This document shows, in pieces, positions 10,411 through 56,712 of a stretch of 64,000 bases of DNA. The translations under genes were made by a program, and so were the position numbers. The stretch is taken from the NCBI GenBank assembly GCA_977017575.1, contig CDRNVI010000028.1:60447-124446 (forward strand), written 5' to 3'. This DNA comes from Paramoeba atlantica. Taxonomy: Eukaryota > Protista > Discosea. Numbering within the stretch: the stretch's first letter is position 1; each line of letters begins with the position of its first letter. The notes under the pieces were generated by a model that saw only the letters and a program-made list of their open reading frames with translations, had not been told where the DNA came from and made no database searches.

Positions 10411-11061
10411 TCAATACCAGGTACGAGGTATAGGTGGTCGCGTGCGCTTCATGAAATCTTTCCACTTTGGGATAGTCGCGCTGTACAAGTGCTTCGCATC
10501 CGGGTCATCGGGGTAGTCCATCACCTTTACGAAAGGCTCGAAAGGGGTGAAAAAGGGGCACTGGTTCTTCCGCCACAAGTCCTCATGGGTAGGGTCGGGC
10601 AATTGCGTGCGTCGACGTTCAATCACCCTGGGATCCTCGAACACGTGGATTTGCTCCACAAAATCACCCGAGTTACTCACCCACCAGCGGTTGTAGCGAT
10701 ACCGAGCAGTAGGATAGGATCCGGATGTGTGGGGAACCAATTCCTTCTGTGGCGACTCTCCTCCCAATGGAGAAGAGGTGGACGGACTTACGTTACGGTC
10801 TTGTAAAGTTTCTGTGGAGGTCCTGTCCCGTTTATGACGCTCGTGTGCGTTTTCCATGCTCTGCTGGACGTAGCTATTCGGAGCAGGGCCTTGAGCATGA
10901 TTGGGGGAGTAGCCAGGAGGGAAGGCACCATCCCCCGGTACTCCTGTCGCGTTTACTTTCCTGTCCCGAAGCCATTGGGCGAGTGCGAGTCTTCGAGGTC
11001 CATGAATGCGGTGGTAAAGCTCTCGCCAGTTCTCATGGATTTGAATGCACCGTCTAAACAT
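10411..11061 (-). CDS. Hypothetical protein, probably mitochondrial (MFRR start)
   Basis: ATG at 11061 gives MFRRC, a typical kinetoplastid presequence start. 216 aa with a W/P/R-rich protein-like composition. Function not recognised. Confidence 0.7.
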   Translation of the reverse strand: MFRRCIQIHENWRELYHRIHGPRRLALAQWLRDRKVNATGVPGDGAFPPGYSPNHAQGPAPNSYVQQSMENAHERHKRDRTSTETLQDRNVSPSTSSPLGGESPQKELVPHTSGSYPTARYRYNRWWVSNSGDFVEQIHVFEDPRVIERRRTQLPDPTHEDLWRKNQCPFFTPFEPFVKVMDYPDDPDAKHLYSATIPKWKDFMKRTRPPIPRTWY

Positions 11062-11409
11062 GATGTGTGAAATAGAACAGCAAGAACGAGAAATAGTGTG
11101 TGATTCGTTAATTCTATATTCAGTGGTGCTGTAAAATGCACCCAAAAAAGGTTTAACTCAGATATGGTAGTGTGTATGTACTACGCTAATGTCTTTTAAA
11201 GAAGTTTCAATAAAAAACACAAGCAGACATGCAAAGGTAAAGACGAAGGTAAAGACACTTTACCTGATTTCTAACCCGGACTTGATTCCTCTTTCGTGTA
11301 AGAATCACACATACAGGCACAACACCTGTTCCAAAAGAGATCAAACTCTTAAATTAGCTCCTCGCACCAAAAAGAGGCACAGAAACTGTATCTTAATCGG
11401 TTCACCATC

Positions 11410-14034: not shown

Positions 14035-14691
14035 AACGAATATACATTGCTAGACGTTAAACGTATATAAAATTCATGTGAGATTAATTTATAGCAGAAC
14101 ACTTATGATCTACACACGCAAGAGAAGTACCGTCCAGGCAATGGTCCCCCCTCTCGTAAGAGCTTTTGACCTAATTCCTTCGACATTCTACAGAGCTCAA
14201 AAAATTAAAGCGATTTCCGCGGTCTTTTTGCCCATACCAACTCCTACGTCCATCATAGCTACAAAATACACGAAAAAATGCTTGTTTTTCCCGAATTTTT
14301 CTAAATTTCCCGTTTGGTTTATTTTTTTAGGACATTTTTTCTTCATAATTGGTTTCTCATTCATGTATGCATTTGATGGAAACTCCCGTTAAATGTATAA
14401 AGGGCCAGTATTCCAACTCAGCCAAAAATGAAACTACTCACAATTACTCACCAAACAGTGCAATGTACCTTCCCACAACGCCTTGAAATTATTTGGTCGT
14501 TAATGGACCGCATCATCAAAAAACATTTTCGAGAACTTGAGAAAGTATTTTTGATTCCGGCTCAACCCATGAAAGAAAATTATAATATTTATAAATGTTT
14601 TAGCAAGTTGTCTACTTTCACTTTATAACTTTAAAGAGTCTCCCAATGCAATCAAGAAAAACCGAGCAACCAAATACAAATCAACCGCTTA

Positions 14692-15207
14692 CTATCCTCC
14701 TATCCTAGCGTTGCCTGGTTTTCGTAAAAAGCAACGCTAGGAGGGGGAGTCAAAAACAGGGACTCAAAAATTGGTAAGCCGAAGATGTTGTGGGATGTGG
14801 TGAGGAGTGTGAATGCGATTACGGGGTTGTGGATAATAAATAATTTATAATGATCTAATTGACCTTAGACGGGCCATGTCTTATTAAAAGGATTAAGAAA
14901 ATGATGTAATCAAATTACGTTTTTATAATTTCTTCCTATTCATTAGAAAATTAAGTAGGTGTTCGTAAAAGGAAGACCTCATAAAATTATGTTCTGCGCA
15001 CTCGGGTTGACATGACACTTGGGTTAGCGAAGCGACCCAAAAAGAAATTACTTCGAAGATAATAATTTCATATTTTTGCATGAATATGACCACAAAAAAT
15101 GAATGGAAAAAATGAAAAACAAATTGCCGCTTCGCGGCAGGATGAACTTCAAAAGCAACGCTAATAAGAGGGGGTACCGGGGCAACGCTAGGATAGGGGG
15201 GGGATAG
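14692..15207. mobile_element. TA-flanked MITE
   Basis: TA|CTATCCTCCTATCCTAGCGTTGCC ... GGCAACGCTAGGATAGGGGGGGGATAG|TA. Confidence 0.7.
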
Positions 15208-15210
15208 TAC

Positions 15211-16445
15211 TACCATTTATGACGCCCGAAATGGCGGCAACGGTCCTTATAGCCCACAAAACTGCCTCCCGATCGGGGGAAGTTAGTCATCTGATGCGGA
15301 AAGATTTCATAGTATTGCGACCGGACTGCATTGTCCTTTACTGGGGCCACAAAACGAAGACTACAAAGGCTCAACTTTTTCGCCCCGATACAATGGTTTG
15401 TTTTCGATGGTACACATACCAACCGTCTGTACCAGTATTTGCGCAATCCTTCCCCCCTGCACTCGAATTACGAGTCTTGGGTCGATCCATATCACCCGCT
15501 TCTTACGAAGCCACCTGGGGAAGGAATATTCGTCCCATTCCATCAAGCGCGGGGGTATTCACCAATTAATGGAGAGTGTTGCGCATGGGAAAGTAACTAT
15601 GGAGGAGGTTATGCGCCTGACCAACCATCGCCAAATATCTTCACTCCTCCGATATTCCGGGATAAACGAAAATACAGCCCGAGCTTTGGGGACCCAGCAT
15701 GCAACGAGATTGTTGTAAAGGAAACGGGACCGACCCAACTAGGCATATCATGGGATACAAAAGAGAAACATGCGCAATTTAGAAGTCGTAGAGTGTGGTC
15801 GCGCCACCATCGAACGTGTCAGAAGCCCACGCCAGAACAGATAAAGTTACCTATTCATACCCCTAACGTGACTGCTCTGGATTTGAATACATTGATGCAA
15901 TGGATGACATCCGCTGTCAAAGAAAGATTTGACGAAATCTGGAAACTTTTAATTTCTCCCACATGCAATAATCGCTACACAAAATTTTCTCCTATAAGTA
16001 AATCCTGTTTCAGAAGCAGACTTGGTACAATTAGTGAAATCAAACATTATACGAAGGGTAGACTACAACGAATTAAAGAGTCGTCCTACGAAAGGCGAGG
16101 TAATACCTTTTACAACACACGAAGAAGGAGCAGAGGGAGCGCGCCGTCGATTTATTTGCTGGCCAAAACAACAGAACCAAGAGTTAGAAATGAGATGTCT
16201 AGCAAATGTTCCAATTGGACAGCCTATTTCTTACGTAGGGAAAATTCTTCATGAACAATCTATAAAAAGGAATTTGAAGACTGGTTTCTTTCAAGTACAA
16301 TGACCCCGTGAGGCTGGGGCGCACTATCGCTTTCAATATGGGGGGCGACTTATGAGATGATGCGCATGCCGATGGGGGATGTCTATGCCCGGGAAATACA
16401 ACAGATTTTGACAACAACCTTAGCTGGACATACAGTGGTGATCAG
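15211..16445 (+). mobile_element. Degenerate tyrosine-recombinase retrotransposon (VIPER/TATE-like): YR followed by RT
   Basis: KTASRSGEV (R), KTKT (K), SHSIKRG (HxxR), LTNH, SLLRY (Y) split over two frames. Downstream NLKTGFFQV*..HYRFQYG..YEMMRMPMG RT motifs carry a stop and frameshifts. Confidence 0.8.
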
Positions 16446-16601
16446 CTTCTTTTACCCCCCCTACAGGTCTTGTATTTTGTTCGATTTTGGAAAGATTTGG
16501 TATACCACCGTTTTTCGACCCAATCGTTCCGAATGAGAGATCCTTTTCACTCGAGCGACCCCCTACCCCCCTAGCCAGGTAGGGGTCAAAAAAGCTAATT
16601 A

Positions 16602-16935
16602 CTGTACCCCCCCTACTTATCTGTCACTGCTTTTCGCGAAAAGGTGACAGATAACTAGGGGGGGTAGGGGTGTGACAGATAACTAGGCGGATCAGTGTAT
16701 ATATAGCATCAGTGTATAATAGCACCACGCACGACCATTCGCTTGAAACACAAAAAGAAAAAATGTAAGTTTCATTTTATCATTTTTTTCAGAAAAAAGC
16801 ATTTTCCCTATTTTTAAAAAGTGACAGATAAAAAAGTCGACTAGTGGGGTAGTCGACGAAAAAAAATTCGAAGTGCCAAAAAGTGACAGATAACTAGGGG
16901 GTGACGTGTGACAGATAACTAGGGGGGGGCACAGT
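16602..16935. mobile_element. TA-flanked MITE
   Basis: TA|CTGTACCCCCCCTACTTATCTGTCAC ... GTGACAGATAACTAGGGGGGGGCACAG|TA, with internal GTGACAGATAACTAGG repeats. Confidence 0.65.
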
Positions 16936-17409
16936 ACAACTTTTTTGGGTGTACTTTTTCGAATGTTTCGGATGAAGAACAGTGGTAAAATAAGTCAGAA
17001 GACGCGGAAAAGGAGTGCAAAGTATTCTCCAGTATTTAGTCATATGCCATTTGGCCTCCTTGACCAAGAGTAAACGAATACGATAGTCCCGGAAGATATT
17101 CTTAAACGTTTCCGGTTGATCTTTAGAATAAAAAACGAATAGTTTCAATGATGGACCCGGGGTTAAATTTATGAAGTTTTGCGACTGCCTTAGAGGGGTG
17201 AAGCCTGCTCGGTTCTAGCGTTCTTCGCCCGTGTTCGCCCGTGTTCGGTCGAGTTAAAAGTTCGGACACTTAAGTTGTGGAGAATATGCAGTTTCTTTCT
17301 AATCTATATTTTGTATTTTGTAATTGTATAGTGCAATTTGACTACCAAAAAAATAAATATTTAATAGCAATTTTTTGTTTTGTACCTAGTTTTTCGGGCT
17401 CGTTTTTGA

Positions 17410-18414
17410 ATGGAACACGACTTGCCCCCCGATCAAAACGTTTATCAAGACGTCTACGGAAATCCTTCCTCAGACACTTATGAACGTCTTCGTAAGTGGG
17501 TGCGCCACCAGATGAAAGAAACCTTCTTGATACCACTAACCCGTAAGGAAATAGTGGATATCAAGTTTGCGGGACTGAGCGCGGCCGAAAAAAATAGCAT
17601 AAAATATGCTGAGAAGCGTATGCCACCTGCGGATCTCCTAGATCGTATAGAAGAGAACATCTTGGAAACCTGTGCAGGATGGCTGGTAGCGCGACGGAAT
17701 CTTGTTCAAGACATGGCGCATACTGGTGTGACGCGCTCTTTGTGTGGAGTGCCCATCGACGAGCGTATATTATTGGAAGCTCTGGTCTTGTTGACTCAAT
17801 CGCGTGATACGGGATTATTGTTCTTCAAAGATGATGAGCGCTCAATGCTCAACGGGGTAAAGGAAGAAGAAATGCCAGCTTATTGGCAGTGGAAAAGCGC
17901 GTGCGGGAAATGGGGATTAAACATGAAAGAGCTTCCGCTCGAATTGCTATCCAAAAAACTATGTGAGTACTTGAAGAAGTGTTACTCTGGCTTGTATGAG
18001 AATTCTTCTAGTGCTCATGAAGTTGTTGCTGAATGGTTTCGTAGCGTTTGGCGAAGTTTACGTGGGGATTCCTCTGAAGTGGCCAAGCGATGTCGCGAGC
18101 GCACCAGGGATATAAAGAGGGTCGTTTCCCTAACGGAGGCTTCAGCATCGCAAACGGCACGTGACGTAAATCAGTTGCAAGACGAATTTCTTGCACTGAA
18201 AAGTGAAGTACAATCCCTCAAGGACCAGTGCTCAATTTTACAGGCTCGTGTGCAGAGTCTGGAGGCGAATAACACCGTTCGTCGACAGGAAGCGTCAAAT
18301 AGCCGATCCAGTGAAGCATTAAACAGACCGCCTCTAATCTATGATGGTCAAAAATTGTCTCGTCCAACTAAATCATTATATGACCAGGCAGGTTTGCGTT
18401 CCATTCGAAAGTGA
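17410..18414 (+). CDS. Accessory ORF of element C (unknown domain plus coiled coil)
   Basis: 334-aa ORF; its N-terminus matches the remnant at 48600-48750 upstream of the paralogous transposase. Confidence 0.7.
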   Translation: MEHDLPPDQNVYQDVYGNPSSDTYERLRKWVRHQMKETFLIPLTRKEIVDIKFAGLSAAEKNSIKYAEKRMPPADLLDRIEENILETCAGWLVARRNLVQDMAHTGVTRSLCGVPIDERILLEALVLLTQSRDTGLLFFKDDERSMLNGVKEEEMPAYWQWKSACGKWGLNMKELPLELLSKKLCEYLKKCYSGLYENSSSAHEVVAEWFRSVWRSLRGDSSEVAKRCRERTRDIKRVVSLTEASASQTARDVNQLQDEFLALKSEVQSLKDQCSILQARVQSLEANNTVRRQEASNSRSSEALNRPPLIYDGQKLSRPTKSLYDQAGLRSIRK

Positions 18415-18671
18415 AAAGGAAAAAGGTACATGTACGAAGACCGGTAAACGAAAAGTAGAAAGTGGCATAGGTACAAACAAGTTATAAAAGTTGCTAGTCA
18501 TTCTACGTTGTTGCTGTTACTCTTGTGTTCATGAAACAATATTTTATTGCTTTGTCTAATGAAAGCTCTTCTTCTGTTTTTCATTTCTGCAATTTTTTGA
18601 GCGCTTCTATTTGTTAACAGTTTCTAGCAAGTGTTTTCTTATCCTAACGCAGTGTTTCATACTGGTATTGT

Positions 18672-19598
18672 ATGTCAAATCCCATGCTGCCTTGGACCCT
18701 TGTGTGCCATGCTTTCACCGGATACAACCCCGACATTGTTCAGTACCTTTCACAGACGTTTAATTGCTCCAACGTTCAAGTTTTCGCTATTTCTATGTTG
18801 CACATGAATTTAACTTTCGAACAGGCTTGTGCTGTTCTTTATCCTTACATTGGCAATCGTCTTTTTTCTCCTACATGGTTTAGAAAGTCGATTATGGAAC
18901 CTGTTCTTGCTGCCTCCAACAACGTAGGAAACATGGCTGATGTTGAAAGAAGATTTAGAGTGCGTGAAGAGAACTATTTTATGTGTACTTCAATTGTCGA
19001 TGGACTTCCTGTCTTCAGAAGGGGCCCGCAAAGTCTGTATAACGGAAAGCACGCCACAAAATACTGGACTTTTCAGGTCTTCATCATGATCGACGGCTGT
19101 CCCTTAGCGTGGAGTGGACCCTTTGAAGGTAGCATGCACGACAGTGAATGCTTGGCTGGGTCCGATATTTATGGATGAACCCACAAGGTGGATGAAATGG
19201 TGATTGCAGACAAAGCTTACCGATCTGTGCGCCACTGCCCACGCCAAGAAACAGGTTCTTCCGTCGATGACCTATTTAACATAGATTTTCGACGTGTGAG
19301 AAACCGAAGAGAACGTTTTTTTGGGCATTTAGACAAACACAAACTGCTCCACTACAATCAGCATAGAAAAGAATTTCTGAAGTCGGCATTCGGACTTCTG
19401 TGGAACAGTGAGTGCGTCGACTGGCGTATTCGCCCTCGGCAACTTTATTTAACTTCGTTGACACTCCTTGATGTCGATCACCCTATTGTACAAGACACGT
19501 GTAATTCTACGCAGCATAATTTTCTAGGATTCTGCAACCATGACACGAAGCAATATAACTTGAGTACAGTGAAGTATTCAAATAGGAGTGGATTATAA
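18672..19598 (+). pseudogene. DDE_Tnp_4 (Harbinger/IS5-like) transposase with an in-frame TGA
   Basis: IVDGLP..YNGKH..GSMHDS | VIADKAY..RNRRERFF. TGA at 19176-19178 aligns to Leu of the 47422 paralogue. Confidence 0.85.
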
Positions 19599-29582: not shown

Positions 29583-31501
29583 CAGGGGGGCGCGATGTTT
29601 CTGGGGGGTCTAAAATTCGCAATATTTGTCCGACTTTGGAAAGTAATAGCGCATTCGAGAGCTCTTGGAAGGTCTGATACTTTTGCGCAATGCTACACAG
29701 GCGGTTACAGTGGTTACTAAGGCAAAAATATACGTTTCTTCGCCTAAAATACCGTTTTTCCTAAACTGCAAGTCGTCTTTTACACTCCGCAGAATATAAG
29801 GATAGCTCATGCATACAGGGGTGAAAACTTCCATCTGGGGGGGTTCCAAAATTTGGAAAATTTGCTCAATTTTGTAAAATAATAGCGCATTGGAGAGCTC
29901 TCGCAGAGTTGTATGTCTTTGGCGTATTCGGAACGCTCGACTTGAAAGATTTAATCTGATGACAAAAAAATAATTTTTTTTTCCTGTGAAAATATGGCAA
30001 TTTTTTGTTTTTCCCCATTTTATGTCTCAAAAGCCAGTTCGCTCAAGGACTTCCCGTGGTGTTTTGAGCGCACGCTCCTATGCCTCACCAGGGAAGATTA
30101 AGGAAAGTCACAGGATGCTTTTTGTGGCGGACTTTGAGAAAACAGAGTCTTATTCCCGGACTGCCCAAAATTTTGGTGTCCACGAGGGAACTGCGAAACT
30201 CTGGGTGGAAAGATTTAATTGCACTGACGACGTGGCCAGTCCATCCCCTACGCGTCAACCTAGGGTCACCACCTCTGATCTTATGAAAGTATCTTTAAAG
30301 CTTATTGATGACGCTTATCGTGACCTCCCTTATGGTATCTCCACTTGGAGCGAGCTCTGGAGAGAGGTAAAGCGACGTGGCTTCACATGTTCAATAACAT
30401 CCCTAAGGAACATGTTGAAAAACTCAAAAGAAAAAATTGTGCTCAGAACAGCTTTAAAGACCCCTTTCTTATCTAATAATCATAAGGAGCGCAGAGTGCA
30501 ATTTGCCACTGAAATGCTACAGTGGAGCGACGCTGCGCTGGAAAATATTATTTTCTGCGACGAAAAAAAATTTACGTGCAAAAGATCCGCCCGACCCACG
30601 TACCTTTGCCGAAAATCTGACCCCCCCAAAGAACAAACAGGGGAATTAGAACCCTATCATGGTGGAGAAGGTATTATGGTTTGGATGGGGGTGAGCTTAA
30701 AGCATGGGTTTCATTTACACGTCTTTCCTACCCATGATTCTCAAGGAAACAAAGTAACTGTAAAGGGACAAAATTTTTATGAAGCCATGAAAAAAAGGGG
30801 GGGTCTGTTCCAATATTTAAGGAGACATCGGGCCACAATAGTGATGGACAATTGCCCGGCACATAATAAGGCTCGTGCCGCGGCCCAAGAAAAGGGTTAT
30901 TCTTGGCTCCGATGGCCAGCACGATCCCCTGATCTAAACCCCATAGAAAATCTTTGGTCAATAATGGACGGGACAAAGGACTAAATTCAACCCAAAAATC
31001 AACAACAATTACTCTCCGCAATTCATGATTCCTATGATAAACTTAATATCTATCTAATTTTGAGAATACGCTAAAAAGCTTCAGAAAGCGTTGTAGAATC
31101 ATTGTAGAAAAGAACGGTGCACATTGCGGATACTAACAGGGGTTACTAACAATCTTCTTGGGGGGGAAAACGTTATTTTTTAATTTTTTTGTATCATTTT
31201 TCAAGTGACAATTCGAGTTTTTGACCTATTCGGCATTTGTAGTTCCACTTTGATATGTTAAAAGCTACCAGTACGAAGACATACAACTCCGCAAGAGTTC
31301 TCGAATGCGCTATTATTTTACAAAATTGAAAAGTTTTTACAAATTTTAGACCCCGCCAGATGAAAGTTTTCACCCCTGTATGTTGAAATAAATTGCGCGA
31401 CAGCATCATACCTTCCAAGAGCTCTCGAATGCGCTATTACTTTCCAAAATTGGTCAAATATTACAATTTTTAGACCCCCCCAGAAACATCACGCCCCCAT
31501 G
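29583..31501 (+). mobile_element. Tc1-like transposon with long IR/DR-type termini
   Basis: TA|CAGGGGGGCGCGATGTTTCTGGGGGGTCTAAAATT... and its inverse ...AGAAACATCACGCCCCCATG|TA. A second inner repeat occurs at about 29813-29920 and 31280-31385. Confidence 0.9.
29986..31134 (+). pseudogene. Tc1-like transposase, frameshifted near the C-terminus
   Basis: HTH (AQNFGVHEGTAKLWVERF), IFCDEKKF, VMDNCPAH and WPARSPDLNPIENLW. The C-terminus continues in other frames to ..IVEKNGAHCGY*. Confidence 0.9.
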
Positions 31502-45324: not shown

Positions 45325-46541
45325 GCCATGAGTTCGGTATATCCCACCATGCACATTTCGGAACAGCTTTTTTAGACAAAGATCCCTGTAGTCTGGGATT
45401 CCCTTTTAGCTGAAGGTATGAACCCAACTGTGCAAGGGACGAATGTTGAAGATAAGAAAAATTCGCAAAACCGCTGAAGTCACAACTTGATATATGATAT
45501 CATACGCTCGTGGCGCAGAGATACGTCTCTCTGTGTGACGGCCGATACCATCGGCGCATGACCCGCATACGACGGATGTCACACAGAGAGTGGAGTGCGA
45601 GGTAGGAGACGAGTCGCCCATCGGTCATGCTACAGCACGTATAGCCATGGTTCATGCTGCAACACGGTCAAGCCGTGGGTTCATGCTGTCAGATGGTCTA
45701 TCGTGGATCATGATGCATCATGGGGAGGTCCGTTACCGCCGCACTCGCTACAGCATGTAGGGAGAGAGGGGTGCAAGTTCGCATCCCCTATACACGCATA
45801 CAACGTGTCCTCCCGCTGTAGCACGCCCAGTGGTCCTCAAGGGAGGCCACCATGGCGCATAGCTCCCGGGAGAAGAAAGCACGAGAAGGAGAGAGCCGGG
45901 GAGGGAAGAAAGCTCACTCGAAGAGAGCGAGCCGGGGAGGGGTGAAGAGTGCGAAGTGCGTCCCCTACTTCCGCGACAAAGAGGGACAGTTCCAGCTAGC
46001 CGTCAGCCGGAAACGGGCATTTAAAAGTAAGAATATGCCCGTTTCCGGGAAAAGAAAGGAAGGGCTAGCAAAATGTACAACAAGGTACAGAAACTGTATC
46101 TTTATTATTTAAAACTCTAATATCAGGAGGAAGATGTTCGAAATGTAGTTCTCCACTAAAAGCATTGGAATGCACCCACAAATTTCGCAAGCCTCGAGGC
46201 AATGCGGAAAAGTCGACACTACCGCTGAGATGGTTGTAGGAGATATCTAGAAATGTGACAGACCGCGGTAAATGTTGCCAATGTAGTATTCCACGTAGCT
46301 CTCGATAAGCCCAACTGATATCTATAATTTCGCCTTGTTTATCGCATTTCGCGCCATCCCACTCACATACAGGTGTGGCAGTACTCCAGGACTCACGTGG
46401 ATTTCCAACATCACTAATGAACTTTGCGAGCTCGTGTTCCTGGGGGAGAAACGTGCCCCTTACCTTTGCTGCACGTGAAACTGAAGTCGCAGAATTATCC
46501 ACACTATTGCAAAGTAGGTGCAAAGAAAACATGTGAATCAT
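45325..46541 (-). pseudogene. LRR paralogue of 42041-42664 split by an insertion
   Basis: The 5' part (about 46106-46541) and 3' part (about 45325-45495) are each collinear with the 42041 gene. Confidence 0.85.
45496..46105. mobile_element. Unclassified insertion of about 610 bp
   Basis: Interrupts the LRR frame (IRVLN|ISSCD); internal GAGAGCCGGGGAGGG direct repeats; no TIR or TSD seen. Confidence 0.65.
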
Positions 46542-47421: not shown

Positions 47422-48258
47422 CTATACGCCTCGAGACTTCCACTCGAGAACTCGGGGATCGCTTTTACTCAGCTCTTCAATAGAGTCCCTGTAATATTGG
47501 GGGCGATCCACCTGCCAGCGCACACACTCAGCGTTCCACAGGAGACCAAAGAAGGAACGTATTACTTCTTTTTTATGACGATTATGTTGAAATATTTGAT
47601 GTTGCTTCAATTGGGCAATAAAGCGTTCCACCCTGTTTCTAATTCGTCGAAATTCCATGTCAAAATGCTCGTCCACCCCACTTCCGATTTCTTGACAAAA
47701 GCAATGACGAACATTCCTGTACGCCTTGTCTGCCATAACGAGCTCGTCAATCCGATGCTCTAGACCAGGAATCCCGAGGCATGCGAAGCATTCACTGTCG
47801 TGCACACGTCCTTCGAAAGGCCCGCTCCAAGCCAGAGGGCATCCGTCCATCATGACGAGAACCTGGAGCGTCCAGTACTTGCAAGCATGCTTCCCATTAT
47901 ACAGCTCACTGGGTCCCCTACTATAGACAGGAAGTCCATCAAAAATACACGTGCACAAAACGAATTGCGACTCTCGCACGGTACAGCGTCTCTCCACAGC
48001 CGCCTGGTTTCCAGCACGATTTGATGCCTGAAGCGATGGAACGACGTAAGTTCTCCACACCCATGTAGGCGAAAACTTATCGGGAAGGTAGGGTGCGAGC
48101 ACGACAGAAGCTTGTGCGTGGGTCAGATTAAGGTGCGCTACGGTCAGTGCACAAAAAAGAAGAAGAAACTCACAATGAAGATGTTCAGAAAGTCGTTGTA
48201 CTACTTCGTAGGTACATCCGGTGAGAGGGAGGCATGCCTCAGGCAGTGATGGTATCAT
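47422..48258 (-). CDS. DDE_Tnp_4 (Harbinger/IS5-like) transposase of element A
   Basis: CIFDGLP, YNGKH, GRVHDS, VMADKAY and RNRVERFI; open frame. Confidence 0.88.
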   Translation of the reverse strand: MIPSLPEACLPLTGCTYEVVQRLSEHLHCEFLLLFCALTVAHLNLTHAQASVVLAPYLPDKFSPTWVWRTYVVPSLQASNRAGNQAAVERRCTVRESQFVLCTCIFDGLPVYSRGPSELYNGKHACKYWTLQVLVMMDGCPLAWSGPFEGRVHDSECFACLGIPGLEHRIDELVMADKAYRNVRHCFCQEIGSGVDEHFDMEFRRIRNRVERFIAQLKQHQIFQHNRHKKEVIRSFFGLLWNAECVRWQVDRPQYYRDSIEELSKSDPRVLEWKSRGV

Positions 48259-50952: not shown

Positions 50953-51090
50953 GTATCATGAATAAGTTAGGTATCTTACCCATGAATGTCATCTTATATG
51001 TATCATGAATAAGTTAGGTATCTTACCCATGAATGTCATCTTATATGTATCATGAATAAGTTAGGTATCTTACCCATGAATGTCATCTTA
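50953..51090 (+). repeat. 47-bp tandem repeat, 3 units
   Basis: GTATCATGAATAAGTTAGGTATCTTACCCATGAATGTCATCTTATAT starting at 50953, 51000 and 51047. Confidence 0.9.
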
Positions 51091-52149
51091 CTTTTTGGTT
51101 TCTCTCTAGGCGATATTTTATCCTGCAATTCTATCATGTACGGCATTACCAGAGAGCAACTCACAGATTTTTTTCTTGAGCTACAGAGAGCAAGTCCTCT
51201 TGTCGCCACGGACACTGATCTCAGACGCCTTAGCTTTTCCTTAGCTATGTGCGCTTTGAACTGCACATGGGAGCAACTGTATGATTTACAGCCCATGTGG
51301 ATTGCTCCCGAAACTCCTCCTCTATCCATCAGGACTCTCCGCGATGACTTTAGCCGCATCGCTGATCTTTGCCGCTCTCCTGCTTTAATGAATCCGAAAC
51401 TTCGTTTCAAGCATGGGGTATCTTGGATGTCTGATGTGACATGTATGATGGACGTCACGACAATCCCATGTCGTGCAAGGAAGCCGCGGGACATATGGGA
51501 CGAAGCCTCTCAGGAAATGAGAAAAAAAGATGCGACCTACTCCGGCAAGCACAGGGAACACTGTTTTAAAGTGGAGTTCTGGCTTACGCTTGCCGGAGTC
51601 CCTATTTTTTTTCGCGGACCCGTTCCGGGCAGTGTACATGATGCGAAAATTTATAAAGAAAGAACCACGCACGGAACATTTCTTTTTGACCATCATGAAG
51701 ATGAAATGTTTTTGGCGGATCTAGGATACGTGGATTGCAACCACTGTTTTGTTCCATTCAAGGCACCACGCAAAGGTTGCCTTGATGAACACCAGGATCG
51801 GTTCAACCGCATGCATTCTTGGATTCGTTCAAGAATCGAGCGTTGTTTCGCTCATTTCGATAAATTTCGTTTTTGTCATGGAACGGATCACGATATTACG
51901 TGGGTAAAGGATGCCGTTCAGATTGTATCTGTTGCAGTGTATGGTTTGCTTGCATCAGAACCCCAGTACGACTTTGATAGTGAAATAAATGTACACTTAC
52001 AAAATATCGATGACTCATCTTTTTGTTGGTGTAGCAAAGGGTGTGGTTTAGTCAAACCGCTTGATGAACGGAGGGATTGGCTCAAAGAACACATATACGA
52101 TGTGGGATATGTTCCCAAGAAACCACAGCATGGATCAAAAACTAAATAA
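51052..52149 (+). CDS. DDE_Tnp_4 (Harbinger/IS5-like) transposase of element B
   Basis: MDVTTIP, YSGKHREHCFK, GSVHDAKI, FLADLGY and RSRIERCF. The true start may be the ATG at 51137 because 51052 lies in the tandem repeat. Confidence 0.9.
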   Translation: MNKLGILPMNVILLFGFSLGDILSCNSIMYGITREQLTDFFLELQRASPLVATDTDLRRLSFSLAMCALNCTWEQLYDLQPMWIAPETPPLSIRTLRDDFSRIADLCRSPALMNPKLRFKHGVSWMSDVTCMMDVTTIPCRARKPRDIWDEASQEMRKKDATYSGKHREHCFKVEFWLTLAGVPIFFRGPVPGSVHDAKIYKERTTHGTFLFDHHEDEMFLADLGYVDCNHCFVPFKAPRKGCLDEHQDRFNRMHSWIRSRIERCFAHFDKFRFCHGTDHDITWVKDAVQIVSVAVYGLLASEPQYDFDSEINVHLQNIDDSSFCWCSKGCGLVKPLDERRDWLKEHIYDVGYVPKKPQHGSKTK

Positions 52150-52647
52150 AATTAAGTATCTAGTCGTTTTCCATGAATTGCGAAATGTAAACTACGTAGT
52201 CATATCGTATACATGGCTTATAAATTTTTGTTATTATCGTATATTATGTACACTATGTATGTCGCACATTATGATTTCTCCTTCGATCTAACTATTTTTC
52301 TCCTTCAATGTCTGCAGCTCCGACTAATTTCGCATGCTTTCAGAGGATTTTTTTCAACCCGCGCCGAACCCGCACCGAACCCGCGACCCGCAGCCCCTCA
52401 GGTATGTAGTTTAAAAAAGGAGAATACCTAGTAAATGTTTTTTAGCTAGTAAAGTTCTACCTAGTAAAAGGTTTTTTTGATGGACGACTTCTAAAGCAAA
52501 TTTAGGAAAATTCAGGCAAATTTAGAAAGGTTTCAGCCCTCTAAACCTCCTTCTGGGAGTGGGTAAAAAGGTTTCCAAACACTCAAGTCAACAAATGGCA
52601 AAGAAAACTTGAGTCGTCAAAAAACATTTGAAGATCTACATGACACC

Positions 52648-53065
52648 CGCACACTGATAACGCATAAAACTCGCACACTAATATTGCATAATGCACACTG
52701 ATAATGCATATAGGCACACTGATAATGCATATAGGCACACTGATAATGCATATAGGAACACTGATAATGCATAAAACTCGCACACTGATAATGCATAATG
52801 CACACTGATAATGCATAATGCACACTGATAATGCATAATGCACACTGATAATGCATATAGGTACACTGATAATGCATATAGGCACACTGATAATGCATAA
52901 AACTCGCACACTGATAATGCATAGTAACTCGCACACTGATAATGCATAATGCACACTGATAATGCATAATGCACACTGATAATGCATAATGCACACTGAT
53001 AATGCACAATGCACACTGATAATGCATAATGCACACTGATAACGCATAATGCACACTGATAATGC
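52648..53065 (+). repeat. Tandem array of about 20-bp units (GCACACTGATAATGCATAAT and variants)
   Basis: About 20 units read directly; two inverted units at about 55163-55200. Confidence 0.92.
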
Positions 53066-53124
53066 ATGAAGCCTATATTAACACAAAGACTGTTTTTTTT
53101 TGATAATTTTTGTTGCATTTTAGT

Positions 53125-54126
53125 ATGAGTGAACCACGAAGTCAACGTGTAGATTCAGAGGACCGCACCATGATTGAGGTGCTTTACAATCAACAGAATT
53201 TCACCCAAGTCCAAATTGCTGCGAAATTGAATATGAATCAATCCTCTCTGAGCCGGAAACTCACACGCGGACTTCGAAATGATACGTACAGTGCCAGGCG
53301 CGCTGAACGAGCAGCGAAGCAGTCCATGCTGAAACGCCAGCCGCGCCCATGCATGATTAAAGGAGAGATTAAAGACAAAGTCGTGTCTCTCCTACGCAGG
53401 CGCTTTAGCCCCCAGCAAATTACAGTAGTCTTGCGCAAAGAAAATGATATTAAAGTATCCCGAACGTCAATATACGGGTTTATCAAGCGGGATGATGGTC
53501 AACATGGGAACTTGGAGAGTTGTCTGCGCCGTGGAGGAAGACGTGGTCAACGTCGCCGTCGGGGAACCAACCGTACCGGTATTCCGAATCGCACCGACAT
53601 TGAGGAGCGACCGAATATTGTTAACAATCGGGAGCGATACGGCGATTGGGAATGTGACCTTATAGAAGGCACAAGACACAGCGGATTCTTCCTCACCTTG
53701 GTTGAGCGAAAGAGTCGGTTCGGGATACTAAAGAAGCTCACATGCAAGAAATCGGCACTGGTCGCTGAAAACATAACCAGTGCTCTTCAAGGTTTCTTGG
53801 TTCACTCCATAACATATGATAACGGAACCGAGTTTGCAAAACACGAGAAAGTAAATCAGTCGCTTAATTGCTCTTCGTATTTTTGTAAACCGTATGCAAG
53901 TTGGGAGAAGGGGGGTGTTGAAAATTTCAACGGCGTAGTACGAGATTTCTACCCGAAACGACGTTTGTTTAGTGACATCTCGCAGAAGGATCTTGACTCC
54001 GTTTCGCGGGATATAAATGCTCGACCAAAAGAAGTGCTCCAAGAGCAATCGCCATCTGAGATCGTAGAAATTCTTCGGAAAACTCGCCCACAATTTTTGG
54101 TCGACAGTTCCCAGGAGTCCTCTTGA
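53125..54126 (+). CDS. IS30-family DDE transposase (HTH_38 plus integrase-like core)
   Basis: QVQIAAKLNMNQSSLSRKL HTH; GDWECD, TLVERKSR, SITYDNGTEF, YFCKPYASWEKGGVENFNG and INARP; D-to-E spacing 33; frame intact. Confidence 0.93.
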   Translation: MSEPRSQRVDSEDRTMIEVLYNQQNFTQVQIAAKLNMNQSSLSRKLTRGLRNDTYSARRAERAAKQSMLKRQPRPCMIKGEIKDKVVSLLRRRFSPQQITVVLRKENDIKVSRTSIYGFIKRDDGQHGNLESCLRRGGRRGQRRRRGTNRTGIPNRTDIEERPNIVNNRERYGDWECDLIEGTRHSGFFLTLVERKSRFGILKKLTCKKSALVAENITSALQGFLVHSITYDNGTEFAKHEKVNQSLNCSSYFCKPYASWEKGGVENFNGVVRDFYPKRRLFSDISQKDLDSVSRDINARPKEVLQEQSPSEIVEILRKTRPQFLVDSSQESS

Positions 54127-54409
54127 ATCTCCGAAGGACCCATCAGTCCCTTTCTCTAGCGCTTTTTATGTGCGTATTTCACTCTTCCATGTGCGTATTT
54201 CACTCTTTACGTGCGTATACAATTTTTAAACATGTTTGGACATCTACTCAACTCCAAGCTGGGCGGGTTCTTCTCTTCTGCATAAGATGTGACTCCCTTG
54301 AAAGCGGCATGGGTTACATAATAAATTCTTCCAATTTTGAGTTTTACCAACTTTCCTTCAACTGCATATTTCCGATTCCTAGAATGGGCTTTCCATTTCG
54401 ATTTTACCT

Positions 54410-55050
54410 TGCAGACGGTTGGGCTTCGCAAATTACTTCCCACTAACGTCAGACGTTTTTGTCTTGCACACGGATAAACAAGGTCTTGGCTTTATTAAGG
54501 GTGGGGTATGGTAGAATTGTTGGGCTTCACAAATGGGTAAACAAGATCTAGGTTCATTGGCCCGGCCGGCCCCTCCGTGCGTTCGGCCTCTCATTTCCCC
54601 CAAATCAACTACCACCTTTCGCGCGACCCCCGCTAAATAGGGGGGGAAGGTGGTAGTTGTGGGGTATGGAGGCCTCTCGCAACTCCGGGGCCTCACCGGG
54701 AACAAAGGTGAAATTATTAGCCGGACGGGTAAACAAGGTCTTGGCTCTATTACGGGTTGGGTATGGTGGAATTGTTGGGCTTCGCAAATTGCTTCCCACT
54801 AACGTCAGACGTTTTTATTTTGCAGACGGGTAAACAAGGTCTTGGCTTTATTACGGGTTGGATATGGTGGAATTGTTGGGCTTCGCAAATTGCTTCCCAC
54901 TAACGTCAGACGTTTTTATCTTGCAGACGGGTAAACAAGGTCTTGGCTTATTACGGGTTGGGTATGGTGGAATTGTCGGGCTTCGCAAATAGCTTCCCAC
55001 TAACGTCAGACGTTGTTATCTTGCAGAAGGGTAAACAAGGTCTTGGCTTT
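54410..55050 (+). repeat. About 100-bp degenerate tandem repeat inside the IS30 element
   Basis: GGGCTTCGCAAAT...CCCACTAACGTCAGACGTT...GGGTAAACAAGGTCTTGGCT at about 54420, 54777, 54878 and 54978. Confidence 0.85.
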
Positions 55051-55560
55051 CGCCTTTTTTTCTAGAGTTTTTTTTCAAGGGCCTTTCTCCAATTTTTTTG
55101 AAGGGCTCAATTTTTTTTTGAAGGGCTCAATTTTTTTTCGAAGGGCTTGCTCAAAATATACGTTATCAGTGTGCGAGTTTTATGCATTATCAGTGTGCGA
55201 GTGGCCATCTTCAAAAACCTTTCTCCTTCGTGTACAAGAGTGAAACTCTCCACTTTTTCTTTCTCTTTCGTACTCTTTCTTCTATAAACAAATAGCAAAG
55301 TATTTTTGTCCCAAACACTTTGAAATGACGTGAAAAAAATAAAAACAAACTCCCAAAAATCACTTCCCTCCCCTCTACCCTTACCCTAACCCCCCGAACC
55401 CCCTTTTTCCTTTCTCCTTCTCCTCCCCCCCTCTTCCCCCCCCCTACCCCCTCCTCAACGACACCACCCCCACCCCCACCACGCCCAGCTCCCTTCTCTT
55501 AGCCCTTTTCGAAAACAACCTCTTGGCTTTGCGTAACCCCGTAGCCCCCCCTTACCCCCC

Positions 55561-56712
55561 CTACCCCCTCCTCAACGACACCACCCCCACCACCACCATC
55601 ACCCCCACCACGACCACCACCCCCACCACCAGCACCACCCCGAGCGCCCTCCTCCTCCCCCTCCTCGAGAGCCTCTTCGCCCGCCGCAGCTCCACGGTCC
55701 CCCTCTCCAGGTAGTCGTTGGTGTCCCGCACCCGCGAGACGACGTCCTCCACGTAGTCCCCCTGGTCGCTGAGGACCGTGGAGAGGTCGTGGAAGAGGGC
55801 GTGGAGACTCCGCAGGGAGGCCTCGAGGGCGTGGACCTCGGTGCGGGTCCCGGAGAGCTCGGAGAGCTTGTGGAGGGACTGGGCGAAGAGCTGGGGGGGA
55901 GGGGCGTGGAGGAGGTGGTCCACGGGGAGGGGGGGGAGAGGGGGGGAGGGGTTGGGGTTGTGGTTATTGTTGTTGTTTGGGTTGTTGTTTGGGTTGTTTT
56001 GGGTTTCATAAAGTGGTAAAGTGGCTTCCGTGGAGGTTCTGGGGTGGGGTTGGGTTTTTGTGGTGGTGAACCAGGTACGGAAAGGGAAAGGGGAGTTTCC
56101 GGTTTTAGGGCTATTTTTGGGATTTGGTGTGGGGTTAGTGTTGTGGGGGGTTGGGTTGGGATGCTTTTCGGTTTTTTCGTTTCTGTTTTGGTTTTGGTTT
56201 TTATCGATTTCTTGTTGTCTCATTTTGTTTTCTTTTTCTTCGGCCACAAGTTTAGTTTTCAGTTGTCGTACCAACTTTGCTTTTTGTTTACGATCCGCCT
56301 CAGTTTGGGTTTCATGGAAGGTGCGGAGACAATCAAGAAACTGACGGTGTAGAAAACGCTCCTGGTTTTCTCGAATACGAGTCCGCGCGTCGCCGGGGGA
56401 ATTCTCCGCTTTTGAAACACAAATTGCATGTTGTGAACGAAGTTGTTGTAGGTGCGTTCGGATGACGTCGCTTTGAGTTCGGATTTGCTCCTCAGTTTCT
56501 CGAATTTCTTCTCTTCTGTTTTCTGAGTCACCAGGAAGGGTAGAGGAGAGGGAAGAAGCGCTCTGGTGAAGGGACTGGAGCTGGGAGAGAGTGTCCTGGA
56601 GCACCGAGAGCTCAGTTTGGAGTTGCTTCGCCAGTGAAAAGAAGGCGTCTTGTTCTGCGGTGACGTCTGGCATGGGGAGTGGGAGGAGAGTGGGGTGTGT
56701 GTGATAAATCAA
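55561..56712 (-). CDS. Syntaxin (Qa-SNARE, plasma-membrane syntaxin-like)
   Basis: Habc helices (RTRIRENQERFLHRQFLDCLRTF), SNARE motif VHALEASLRSLHALFHDLSTVLSDQGDYVEDV with central Q, C-terminal TM. Confidence 0.9.
   Translation of the reverse strand: MIYHTHPTLLPLPMPDVTAEQDAFFSLAKQLQTELSVLQDTLSQLQSLHQSASSLSSTLPGDSENRREEIRETEEQIRTQSDVIRTHLQQLRSQHAICVSKAENSPGDARTRIRENQERFLHRQFLDCLRTFHETQTEADRKQKAKLVRQLKTKLVAEEKENKMRQQEIDKNQNQNRNEKTEKHPNPTPHNTNPTPNPKNSPKTGNSPFPFRTWFTTTKTQPHPRTSTEATLPLYETQNNPNNNPNNNNNHNPNPSPPLPPLPVDHLLHAPPPQLFAQSLHKLSELSGTRTEVHALEASLRSLHALFHDLSTVLSDQGDYVEDVVSRVRDTNDYLERGTVELRRAKRLSRRGRRRALGVVLVVGVVVVVGVMVVVGVVSLRRG

Follow-up and report, generated by a model that had tools for sequence, protein, structure and literature searches.

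Few links between prokaryotic insertion sequences (IS) and eukaryotic transposon superfamilies have been described, and each of them shows how an element crosses between domains and adapts to chromatin, the nucleus, and eukaryotic expression. In a survey of 430 genomes, IS607 was the only such family detected (PMC3673617). The links added later are, according to the passages cited, IS481EU and IS3EU (PMC10045372, PMC13343696). IS481EU, a eukaryotic transposon superfamily of parabasalids, stems from prokaryotic IS481 (Kojima and Bao 2023, PMC10045372). IS3EU/GingerRoot and Ginger1/Ginger2 are described, in the sections consulted, as eukaryotic cut-and-paste elements (PMC2836005; cited in PMC10045372 and PMC13343696), and the transposases of IS3EU and Ginger fall within the integrase-like DDE group, of which IS3, IS481, and IS30 are also members.

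A literature search found no paper on IS30 in eukaryotes. The window analysed here (the whole stretch of DNA, 64,000 nucleotides long) contains an element of 2558 bp (2.56 kb) at about 52644–55201. In our view, this region is very probably an autonomous member of a multicopy DNA transposon family in the nuclear genome of a eukaryote, with a transposase of bacterial IS30 descent that was most likely acquired in one transfer from a PVC bacterium. We consider the family a candidate for a new lineage among eukaryotic DNA transposons, and a single genome shows its trajectory: a bacterial sister group, a long stem, changes in the protein, rebuilt ends, radiation into subfamilies, and non-autonomous derivatives.

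The transposase and its bacterial relatives

The transposase gene occupies positions 53125–54126 of the forward strand. The unbroken ORF reported in the initial annotation indeed reads open throughout, beginning with an ATG (53125) and closing with a stop codon (54124–54126), and encodes 333 aa. ORF, profile, alignment, motif, and AlphaFold evidence identify it as an intact IS30-family DDE transposase gene. The protein matches the NCBIfam IS30 model (NF033563) with 253.2 bits (cut-off 80, E-value 3.4e-75) over profile positions 1–266 of 267. The core motifs GDWECD, TYDNGTEF, and WEKGGVEN, on which the IS30 assignment had been based, are all present, and the catalytic triad is D178/D232/E266, that is D(53)D(33)E, in agreement with the DD33E signature proposed earlier. 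When aligned with bacterial IS30 transposases, both aspartates are invariant and the glutamate is nearly so, being lost in one copy (P0002). The helix-turn-helix (HTH) domain claimed for the N-terminus is seen as a helical, HTH-like region: the AlphaFold model of the window protein places helices at residues 11–125 with a pLDDT of about 90 (overall mean 86.7), the Pfam HTH_32 (E-value 4.9e-5) and MarR-like matches there are both under their cut-offs, and HTH_38 is annotated on the proteins of sister copies. The catalytic core in the same model is integrase-like. Judged by its sequence, the window protein represents an entire DDE enzyme of the IS30 type.

Like IS481EU, this family is a case of a prokaryotic IS family with an integrase-like DDE transposase founding lineage-restricted eukaryotic transposons, and the catalytic fold is related. 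The parent family differs, since the window transposase scores only 62 bits against the NCBIfam IS481 model (NF033577, cut-off 224) versus 253 bits against IS30, and the host group is different as well. The target duplications given for IS481EU in the cited part of its description are about 4, 15, or 25 bp (PMC10045372), whereas the candidate duplication in the window is 3 bp. Unlike the new family, IS3EU/GingerRoot and Ginger are not IS30-derived; no IS3 model was among the NCBIfam scan matches of the window transposase.

In an unrooted tree (midpoint root only) of nine eukaryotic copies and bacterial IS30, the eukaryotic copies group in a single clade (support 100/100) whose stem measures 0.61 substitutions per site, and this clade is nested (97/86) among the IS30 transposases of Verrucomicrobiota and Planctomycetota. 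A bacterial origin of the transposase, and with it the horizontal acquisition of an IS30 proposed in the initial annotation, is supported by this sequence-based placement within IS30, among PVC bacteria.

The relatives in these two phyla are 41–48% identical to the eukaryotic protein and share with it the N-terminal HTH and the DD33E integrase-like core, as well as the arrangement of a single ORF between inverted ends. Those measured are 1071–1214 bp (1.07–1.2 kb) long, have simple inverted repeats of ~25 bp, and lack internal arrays; three identical 1214-bp copies reside in one Verrucomicrobiae genome (L021–L023). Unlike bacterial IS30 (~1.0–1.25 kb, with simple repeats of 20–30 bp), the eukaryotic elements are 2.2–2.6 kb long and carry 20-bp arrays, 101-bp repeats (in the window), a palindromic module, and a T-rich leader. 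The eukaryotic protein differs too, adding an Arg-rich disordered linker and an acidic, Ser-rich tail: the linker, RRGGxRGxRRRRG, occurs in all eukaryotic copies and in no bacterial sequence aligned here, and the C-terminal LVDSSQE tail, along with certain residues, is common to the eukaryotic copies and missing from the aligned bacterial sequences. That the element might represent a new eukaryotic lineage had been suggested from the window itself; a distinct, eukaryote-style lineage is now supported by the size of the elements, their subterminal arrays, the subfamilies, the deletion derivatives, and the eukaryote-specific C-terminal tail.

Repeated, independent acquisition from related bacteria, once for each subfamily, would be in keeping with the deep divergence of the subfamilies (56–82% amino-acid identity, saturated dS) and with a 20-bp unit that is different in each of them. 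However, all nine copies in the tree fall into the single clade, without any bacterial sequence inside it, and the LVDSSQE tail, the Arg-rich linker, the arrays, the GC-rich module, and the T-rich leader are common to all and not found in the bacterial sequences aligned and the bacterial elements examined here. Repeated transfer is thus very improbable, and a single acquisition remains the preferred reading.

Copies and their residence in eukaryotic chromosomes

Towards the copy count recommended in the initial annotation, protein searches gave 12 proteins more than 55% identical (including that of the window), all from assembly ERZ24900291. The other matches among 15 billion proteins are at most about 47% identical, and the named ones, few library entries being named, are bacterial. 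The 11 further copies are spread over nine other contigs, the longest of 122 kb. A syntaxin/SNARE gene is located ~360 bp beyond the right end of the window element, one sibling copy (L001), on a contig of 122 kb, has PIG-P/kinesin genes on one side and an HSP90 gene on the other, and another (L003) is ~6 kb from an adaptin gene; no bacterial gene was found beside any copy. Host PRP16 and HSP90 are clearly eukaryotic, with 44–50% identity to those of unrelated eukaryotes (PRP16 compared with a protein library, HSP90 with solved structures). Copies are thus integrated among the eukaryotic genes for kinesin, HSP90, PRP16, adaptin, and syntaxin, which again distinguishes the family from bacterial IS30.

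The genome had initially been called kinetoplastid-like. Its host is a eukaryote with intron-poor genes in same-strand clusters, which may or may not be a kinetoplastid. A kinetoplastid spliced-leader core has one 1-mismatch site in the window, at 46084–46096, which is not significant, and Rfam at gathering score gave no match across the window. Should the host be of the kinetoplastid type, it would belong to a group in which DNA transposons were themselves discovered only recently (PMC8101967).

One has to consider whether the IS30 of a culture bacterium could have been fused with eukaryotic DNA in silico, through contamination or chimeric assembly. IS30 is bacterial elsewhere, the contig of this locus in the ENA assembly breaks off at window position 55143, within the T-rich repeat and so inside the element, and the two assemblies differ in the number of 20-bp units at the locus (24 in the ENA assembly versus 20 in the window). 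Nevertheless, read contigs join the element to both flanks, a point that the initial annotation had asked to be verified with long reads: the left junction is bridged by contigs of runs X3 and X1 and the right one, narrowly, by one short X1 contig with only 29 element letters in it. Contamination is also contradicted by the 11 other copies, some of them between eukaryotic genes and each without an adjoining bacterial gene, by the size of the element, twice that of its bacterial relatives and with arrays that those lack, by its host-like base composition, and by the identity ceiling of about 47% outside the assembly. This explanation is very unlikely and close to refuted.

The resident transposon family has diversified into subfamilies under purifying selection. 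The subfamilies are 56–82% identical in amino acids, and each has its own 20-bp repeat unit. Between them, dS is about 2 (saturated) and dN/dS is 0.03–0.07; for instance, the window copy shows dN 0.155 and dS 2.1 against L093 and dN 0.07 and dS 2.5 against L009, and in the deepest pairs the saturation of synonymous sites leaves the Nei–Gojobori estimate undefined. The GC and GC3 of the transposase genes are like those of host genes and fall below the values of the bacterial relatives. Both the divergence and the base composition speak for a long stay in this genome. A domesticated, transposase-derived host gene that is no longer a mobile element could also account for the strong purifying selection seen between subfamilies, and one copy (L002) does have a full ORF from which the catalytic glutamate is gone. 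Yet the window ORF keeps the entire triad and is flanked by inverted terminal repeats, and near-identical and decayed paralogues are found at unrelated loci, together with deletion derivatives. We regard domestication as highly improbable, and mobile elements as the correct description of these loci. The ORF-deletion derivatives, which outnumber the autonomous copies, were recognized as read joints at 53135>54761, 53098>54772, 53096>54992, and 52860>54618, three of the four in two runs.

The family might also be real but extinct, the window copy being a fossil with an ORF still open by chance. Damage, in the form of stop codons, frameshifts, truncations, or the loss of a catalytic residue, affects seven of the 11 readable copies, and the recent copies appear neutral, the dN/dS between the window and L092 being about 0.8. 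The one RNA-labelled run searched contained nothing from the window stretch and no transcript of the ORF, spliced or unspliced. Against extinction, two complete elements from different subfamilies, the window element and L093, have intact ORFs and the full DDE triad; the coding DNA of the window and L092 is 98.8% identical, with a dS of 0.014; and several ORF variants 95–99% alike are present in read contigs at a depth above that of the flank. We would leave extinction a small but real chance, and favour a family that is still active.

Internal architecture of the element

Most of the sequence between the left end and the transposase gene is an array of 20 tandem 20-bp units with the consensus GCACACTGATAATGCATAAT (52649–53067, forward strand), which reiterate the core sequence of the terminal inverted repeat; Tandem Repeats Finder reports 19.9 copies with a period of 20 and 88% matches. 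The unit motif occurs in the window element 20 times in the forward orientation and twice in reverse; across the eukaryotic elements, 8–20 tandem units lie inside the left end and 2–9 inverted ones inside the right. These units are presumed to be candidate transposase-binding sites. A sigma-70 promoter scan gave 19 matches, all of them the 20-bp repeat unit, and was dismissed as an artefact.

Subterminal arrays of transposase-binding repeats and MITE-like deletion derivatives are features of En/Spm-CACTA, Ac/Ds, and P elements. The family described here resembles them in the short, binding-site-like repeats inverted inside both ends and in the excess of ORF-deleted derivatives over autonomous copies; the transposase families are unrelated.

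The array is followed by the leader (53068–53124, forward strand), a T-rich tract with an AG 2 nt before the ATG, the start of the ORF reading TTTTAG and then TATG. Both the tract and the AG had been likened to a trans-splice acceptor in the initial annotation. The T-rich tract lies between the array and the ATG in all subfamilies seen (six of six leaders), but the AG upstream of the ATG is present in only three of the six. Because of the conserved tract and the host-like base composition, the leader may be read as a possible trans-splice acceptor region. The lack of a Shine–Dalgarno sequence, although correctly observed, is not diagnostic and says little, since a verrucomicrobial relative likewise shows none.

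The features downstream of the ORF are all given for the forward strand. The 3′ spacer (54127–54417) includes 2.7 copies of a 21-bp repeat at 54165–54218, as found by the tandem-repeat scan. Next comes the first unit of a 101-bp repeat (54418–54534), which begins GGGCTTCGCAAATT.CTTCCCAC; the same motif stands ahead of the GC-rich module in L001, L003, and L008. This palindromic module (54535–54723, core 54554–54711) separates the first unit from the remaining ones, 3.2 tandem copies at 54724–55050 identified by the same scan and with very high read depth. The module is conserved across subfamilies, being 84–98% identical in L001, L003, L005, L007, L008, L010, and L093, and its folding energy as DNA is −46.9 kcal/mol (z −5.8). 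It is highly multicopy in the genome, with a summed read depth of 11,000–19,000 versus 12–52 over the syntaxin gene. Its copies far exceed the ORFs, and the module with arrays also occurs where there is no ORF nearby. The module is probably a cis-acting part of the transposon family. Its reading as a small RNA was discarded, the matches in an Rfam E-value scan being only at chance level. Close to the right end, at 55093–55147, the tandem-repeat scan detected 2.8 copies of a T-rich 20-bp repeat (TTTTTTTGAAGGGCTCAATT), and a similar T-run/GGGG repeat occupies the corresponding position of L003 and L093.

Element ends, target site, and a possible mechanism

The element is bounded by an imperfect terminal inverted repeat with arms of 47 nt (52644–52690 and 55157–55203, 87% complementary). 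The left arm, on the forward strand, begins CACCCGCAC, a terminus matched in L003, with the variants CACACGCAC in L093 and CGCCCGCAC in L008. The right repeat (55157–55201, reverse strand) comprises two inverted 20-bp units and ends in GTGCGAG, as it does in L005, L003, L008, and L093. Thus, the termini CAC(C/A)CGCAC ... GTGCGAG, followed by TGG, are common to four complete copies from three subfamilies, with the left variant of L008 noted above; the three complete copies other than the window element are 2165–2522 bp long.

The ends had initially been placed at TGAAGAT. TGAAGAT (52629–52635) and ATCTTCA (55207–55213) do form a genuine inverted pair, and the full inverted 9-mer is TTTGAAGAT (52627–52635, inverted again at 55207–55215), but they lie outside the element: sibling copies cease to match the window at 55204/55205 (read-contig joints and the right end of L005), and the conserved termini are 3–9 nt further inside. 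TGAAGAT was therefore rejected as the element end. The 9-mer, located beyond the region matching sibling copies, probably belongs to a palindromic target site.

The left candidate 3-bp target-site duplication (52641–52643) reads TGA in both the window and the ENA assembly; the read contigs of three runs (X1, X2, and X3) have TGG there, with A>G at position 52643, and L004 has TGA. To the right, TGG at 55202–55204, past which (55204/55205) other copies diverge, represents either the candidate duplication of the target site or a terminal trinucleotide that is conserved. TGG stands on both sides in three of the four complete copies (the window element as read contigs have it, L093, and L008), and L003 has GGG on the left and TGG on the right; L001, L006, and L002, with their ill-defined termini, were left out. 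All five right ends seen (window, L003, L005, L008, and L093) read GAG-TGG, and no empty site was found through flank paralogues among the DNA searched, so that a TGG duplication and a conserved trinucleotide are indistinguishable. The comparison of flanks proposed in the initial annotation has thus delivered the TGG pair but not the empty site. The flanks of the window element are unique among the DNA compared, except for a 100-bp repeat at 52306–52405. Bacterial IS30 elements duplicate 2–3 bp of their target. The TGG pair is compatible with the 3-bp duplications made by the bacterial IS30 relatives, which in the verrucomicrobial ones are CTG, ATA, and GTT. If TGG is taken to be the duplication, there is a 2-nt offset between the two termini (CACCCGCAC versus CTCGCAC).

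In the mechanism that we propose, the transposase gene is probably transcribed by read-through in the same-strand clusters of the host, and the conserved T-rich tract ahead of the ATG may serve RNA processing. The N-terminal HTH domains would bind the subfamily-specific 20-bp units, arrayed in inverted orientation inside both ends, and the transposase-bound ends would then be drawn together. The DDE core would cut at the CAC...GAG termini, with a 3-bp staggered insertion at a preferred TGG, and bacterial IS30 serves as a model for a possible intermediate with joined ends (IR–IR) or in circular form. On balance, we lean towards an undescribed, still active superfamily ('IS30EU') that arose by one bacterium-to-protist transfer, with its own 20-bp arrays, a GC-rich module carried on many non-autonomous elements, and TGG insertion with a 3-bp duplication. 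The intact transposase and the defined 20-bp sites would make the element a candidate genetic tool for such protists. At two of the four target sites seen, a small palindrome is centred on TGG.

The transposase and its bacterial relatives

The element at about 52644-55201 of the window belongs to a genuine multicopy eukaryotic branch of the IS30 family, in which the architecture of the element has been rebuilt. Its ORF is indeed uninterrupted, as the initial annotation stated, and runs from the ATG at 53125 to a stop at 54124-54126 (333 codons). The protein aligns along the entire NCBI curated IS30 model, scoring 253 bits where the cut-off is 80 (E 3.4e-75); its score with the related IS481 model stays far under the cut-off of that model. 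The catalytic triad consists of D178, D232, and E266, with 33 residues separating the last two. In the alignment with bacterial members, both aspartates are invariant and the glutamate is nearly so, being lost in one family protein, P0002. In the AlphaFold model of the window protein (mean pLDDT 86.7), the N-terminal half is helical, the core is of the integrase-like RNase H type, and disorder is confined to an Arg-rich linker (residues 137-149) and the final 13 residues. The structures that the model matches best are those of retroviral integrases and of the IS21 and TnsB transposases.

Several features are common to the eukaryotic proteins and absent from the aligned bacterial ones, namely T in place of L in YDNGTEF, A in PYASWEKGG, D in VRDFYPK, the linker RRGGxRGxRRRRG, and an extra C-terminal tail finishing in LVDSSQE. 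A family member in locus L002 (3102-4124) has a full-length 340-aa ORF with GGVKRF in place of GGVENF, so that the catalytic glutamate and the following residue are both substituted; only a short array with a 10-bp period lies upstream. This copy is either a relic or a domesticated one.

When 5.8 billion clustered proteins and 1.84 billion representatives were searched, twelve proteins in all proved more than 55% identical to the transposase, its own entry counted; every one comes from assembly ERZ24900291. The remaining matches are at 47% identity or below, and the named ones are all bacterial, the best coming from Akkermansiaceae, Puniceicoccaceae, other Verrucomicrobiota, and Pirellulales. 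The Atlas clusters resembling the transposase are bacterial throughout. In a maximum-likelihood tree of 60 sequences, rooted at the midpoint only, the nine eukaryotic copies form a single clade (100/100 support) whose stem measures 0.61 substitutions per site, and this clade groups with verrucomicrobial and planctomycetal IS30 sequences at 97/86 support, in agreement with the bacterial origin proposed initially. So far, the family is confined to this genome.

No account of a eukaryotic transposon derived from IS30 turned up in full-text literature searches. In a survey of 430 eukaryote genomes, IS607 alone was found (PMC3673617), and a 2026 paper names IS630-Tc1/mariner, IS3-IS3EU, and IS481-IS481EU as prokaryote-eukaryote links (PMC13343696), the last of which is also treated in PMC10045372. 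The branch is of clear interest for transposon classification and for research on cross-domain transfer.

Architecture and ends of the element

The ORF lies in a unit of 2.56 kb that has an imperfect inverted repeat of 47 nt at its ends (52644-52690 and 55157-55203). Twenty tandem copies of a 20-bp unit, which is the core of the terminal repeat again, occupy 52649-53067 and are followed by a leader that is rich in T and closes with an AG 2 nt ahead of the ATG. Downstream of the ORF (53125-54126) come a spacer, 101-bp repeats broken up by a GC-rich palindromic module, a T-rich 20-bp repeat, and two inverted 20-bp units within the right terminus. The bacterial IS30 relatives measured are 1071-1214 bp long and have simple inverted repeats of about 25 bp without arrays, in contrast to the arrayed family described here. 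Each subfamily carries its own unit of about 20 bp (GCACACTGATAATGCATAAT in the window, GCACCCTTATCTGTCATAA in L003, and GCACATTGATAATGCATATA in L008), repeated 8-20 times within the left end and, in inverted orientation, 2-9 times within the right.

The inverted TGAAGAT pair taken initially for the element ends does exist, as the inverted 9-mer TTTGAAGAT at 52627-52635 and 55207-55215, but it lies outside the element, because copies of the same subfamily part from the window past 55204/55205 (read-contig joints and the right end of the copy in L005) and because the termini CAC(C/A)CGCAC ... GTGCGAG, followed by TGG, are common to four complete copies that represent three subfamilies. The left end of L008 departs from this consensus and reads CGCCCGCAC. 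As to the suggested trans-splice-acceptor-like leader, all subfamilies keep a tract rich in T between the array and the start codon, but just three of six have an AG ahead of the ATG; no transcripts of the window stretch were found in the single RNA-labelled run searched.

The GC-rich module (about 170 bp; window 54535-54723, core 54554-54711) recurs at L001 9358-9537, L003 9956-10122, L008 2780-2955, and L010 10473-11318. It folds into a long hairpin (z -5.8), keeps its position and orientation relative to the ORF across subfamilies, and is 84-98% identical between them, as against 66-73% for coding DNA; conservation of this degree calls for selection or for ongoing exchange among subfamilies. 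Read depth summed over the module exceeds that of the single-copy flank roughly 100-1000 times, and the module is also found beside arrays of another 20-bp unit, in clusters without a nearby ORF. A second conserved non-coding motif, TCCACAGCTC ... GAGATTTCTGTGGTTT, with complementary CCACAG/CTGTGG, accompanies the ORF on its 3' side in three subfamilies (L001 9105-9290, L002 4300-4385, L003 9795-9885); it is doubled in L001 and missing from the subfamily of the window.

Residence among eukaryotic genes and the target site

Residence in eukaryotic DNA is supported by read contigs covering the junctions and by sister copies lying among eukaryotic genes in long contigs. The left junction is covered by short-read contigs of three public runs (e.g., 52518-52712 in X3 and 52513-52670 in X1), and the right one by a single X1 contig (55176-55467) that reaches just 29 letters into the element. 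The contig of this locus in the ENA assembly terminates at window position 55143, within the T-rich repeat, and counts 24 of the 20-bp units against 20 in the window; the arrays are therefore hard to assemble. Evidence independent of this locus comes from long contigs of the same assembly, where the sister element in L001 has PIG-P/kinesin genes on one side and an HSP90 gene on the other, and that in L003 lies about 6 kb from an adaptin gene. PRP16 and HSP90 of L001 are plainly eukaryotic, and bacterial genes were found beside none of the family copies.

The right flank of the window element holds a syntaxin/SNARE gene (55561-56712, minus strand) with a long N/P/T-rich low-complexity insert between its Habc-like region and the SNARE motif; beside it, 55330-55600 is an unusually C-rich low-complexity tract. 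Host genes may be intron-poor and arranged in one-strand clusters.

A verrucomicrobial relative present in three identical copies is flanked by 3-bp duplications (CTG, ATA, and GTT). If the eukaryotic element is taken as CAC...GAG, TGG stands on both sides in L093, L008, and the window. In the last case, the left flank is read from read contigs: position 52643 is A in both long-read assemblies, the window's and that of ENA (left flank TGA), but G in every X1 and X3 read contig and in most of X2, which makes the left flank TGG, like the right. The flanks of L003 are GGG and TGG, and all five right ends seen read GAGTGG. These flanks fit a candidate 3-bp duplication with a preference for TGG, in which case the termini would be 2 nt out of register; the search for an empty site found none. 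Rebuilt with TGG as the duplication, the window target would be a near-palindrome, TTTGAAGAT ... ATGGCCAT ... ATCTTCAAA, and the L093 target contains GCCATTGGC.

Age, decay, and neighboring mobile elements

Comparisons between subfamilies show a conserved protein but saturation at synonymous sites (dN 0.155 and dS 2.1 for window versus L093; dN 0.07 and dS 2.5 for window versus L009). The composition of the transposase genes is that of the host: their GC3 is 0.41-0.51, compared with 0.39-0.47 in five host genes and 0.66 in one, and with 0.59-0.76 in five of the six bacterial relatives measured (0.50 in the sixth). Within the window's subfamily, the coding DNA of the L092 copy matches that of the window at 98.8% identity and gives a dN/dS close to 0.8, as expected for copies drifting since a recent insertion. 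A second complete element, that of L093, measures 2321 bp, belongs to a sister subfamily, and retains an intact ORF of 330 aa. Seven of the eleven readable copies are damaged: they carry stops or frameshifts, are truncated, or lack the catalytic glutamate. Read contigs also contain forms that skip the ORF (53135>54761, 53098>54772, 53096>54992, and 52860>54618), three of them found in two runs and two with short filler sequence; these are internally deleted, non-autonomous derivatives. The eukaryotic branch is probably still active.

Two copies from different subfamilies are nested or rearranged in L005 (3312-6919), where the window-type copy is cut exactly at the module palindrome center (window 54618/54619), with the halves oppositely oriented. 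Mobile elements of several classes abound in this genome. Harbinger/PIF-type DDE_Tnp_4 ORFs occur at window 51052-52149 and 47422-48258 and at L009 4496-5668, and Tc1/mariner-type ORFs (DDE_3, HTH_Tnp_Tc3_2) share contigs with hAT and reverse-transcriptase/RNase H ORFs (window 29986-30984, L006 3430-4587, and L010 7541-8026). L010 and L011 belong to contig ctg3742c (28.9 kb, circular according to its name), in which a block of about 11 kb with RNase H, DUF6729, an IS30 fragment, and DDE_3 is present twice, which may be a tandem-repeat assembly artefact. Finally, window 52306-52405 holds a 100-bp repeat that reappears with 98% identity at L009 5874-5973, where it adjoins a 5'-truncated IS30 copy, and many read contigs part from the window after 52400, as at a repeat end.
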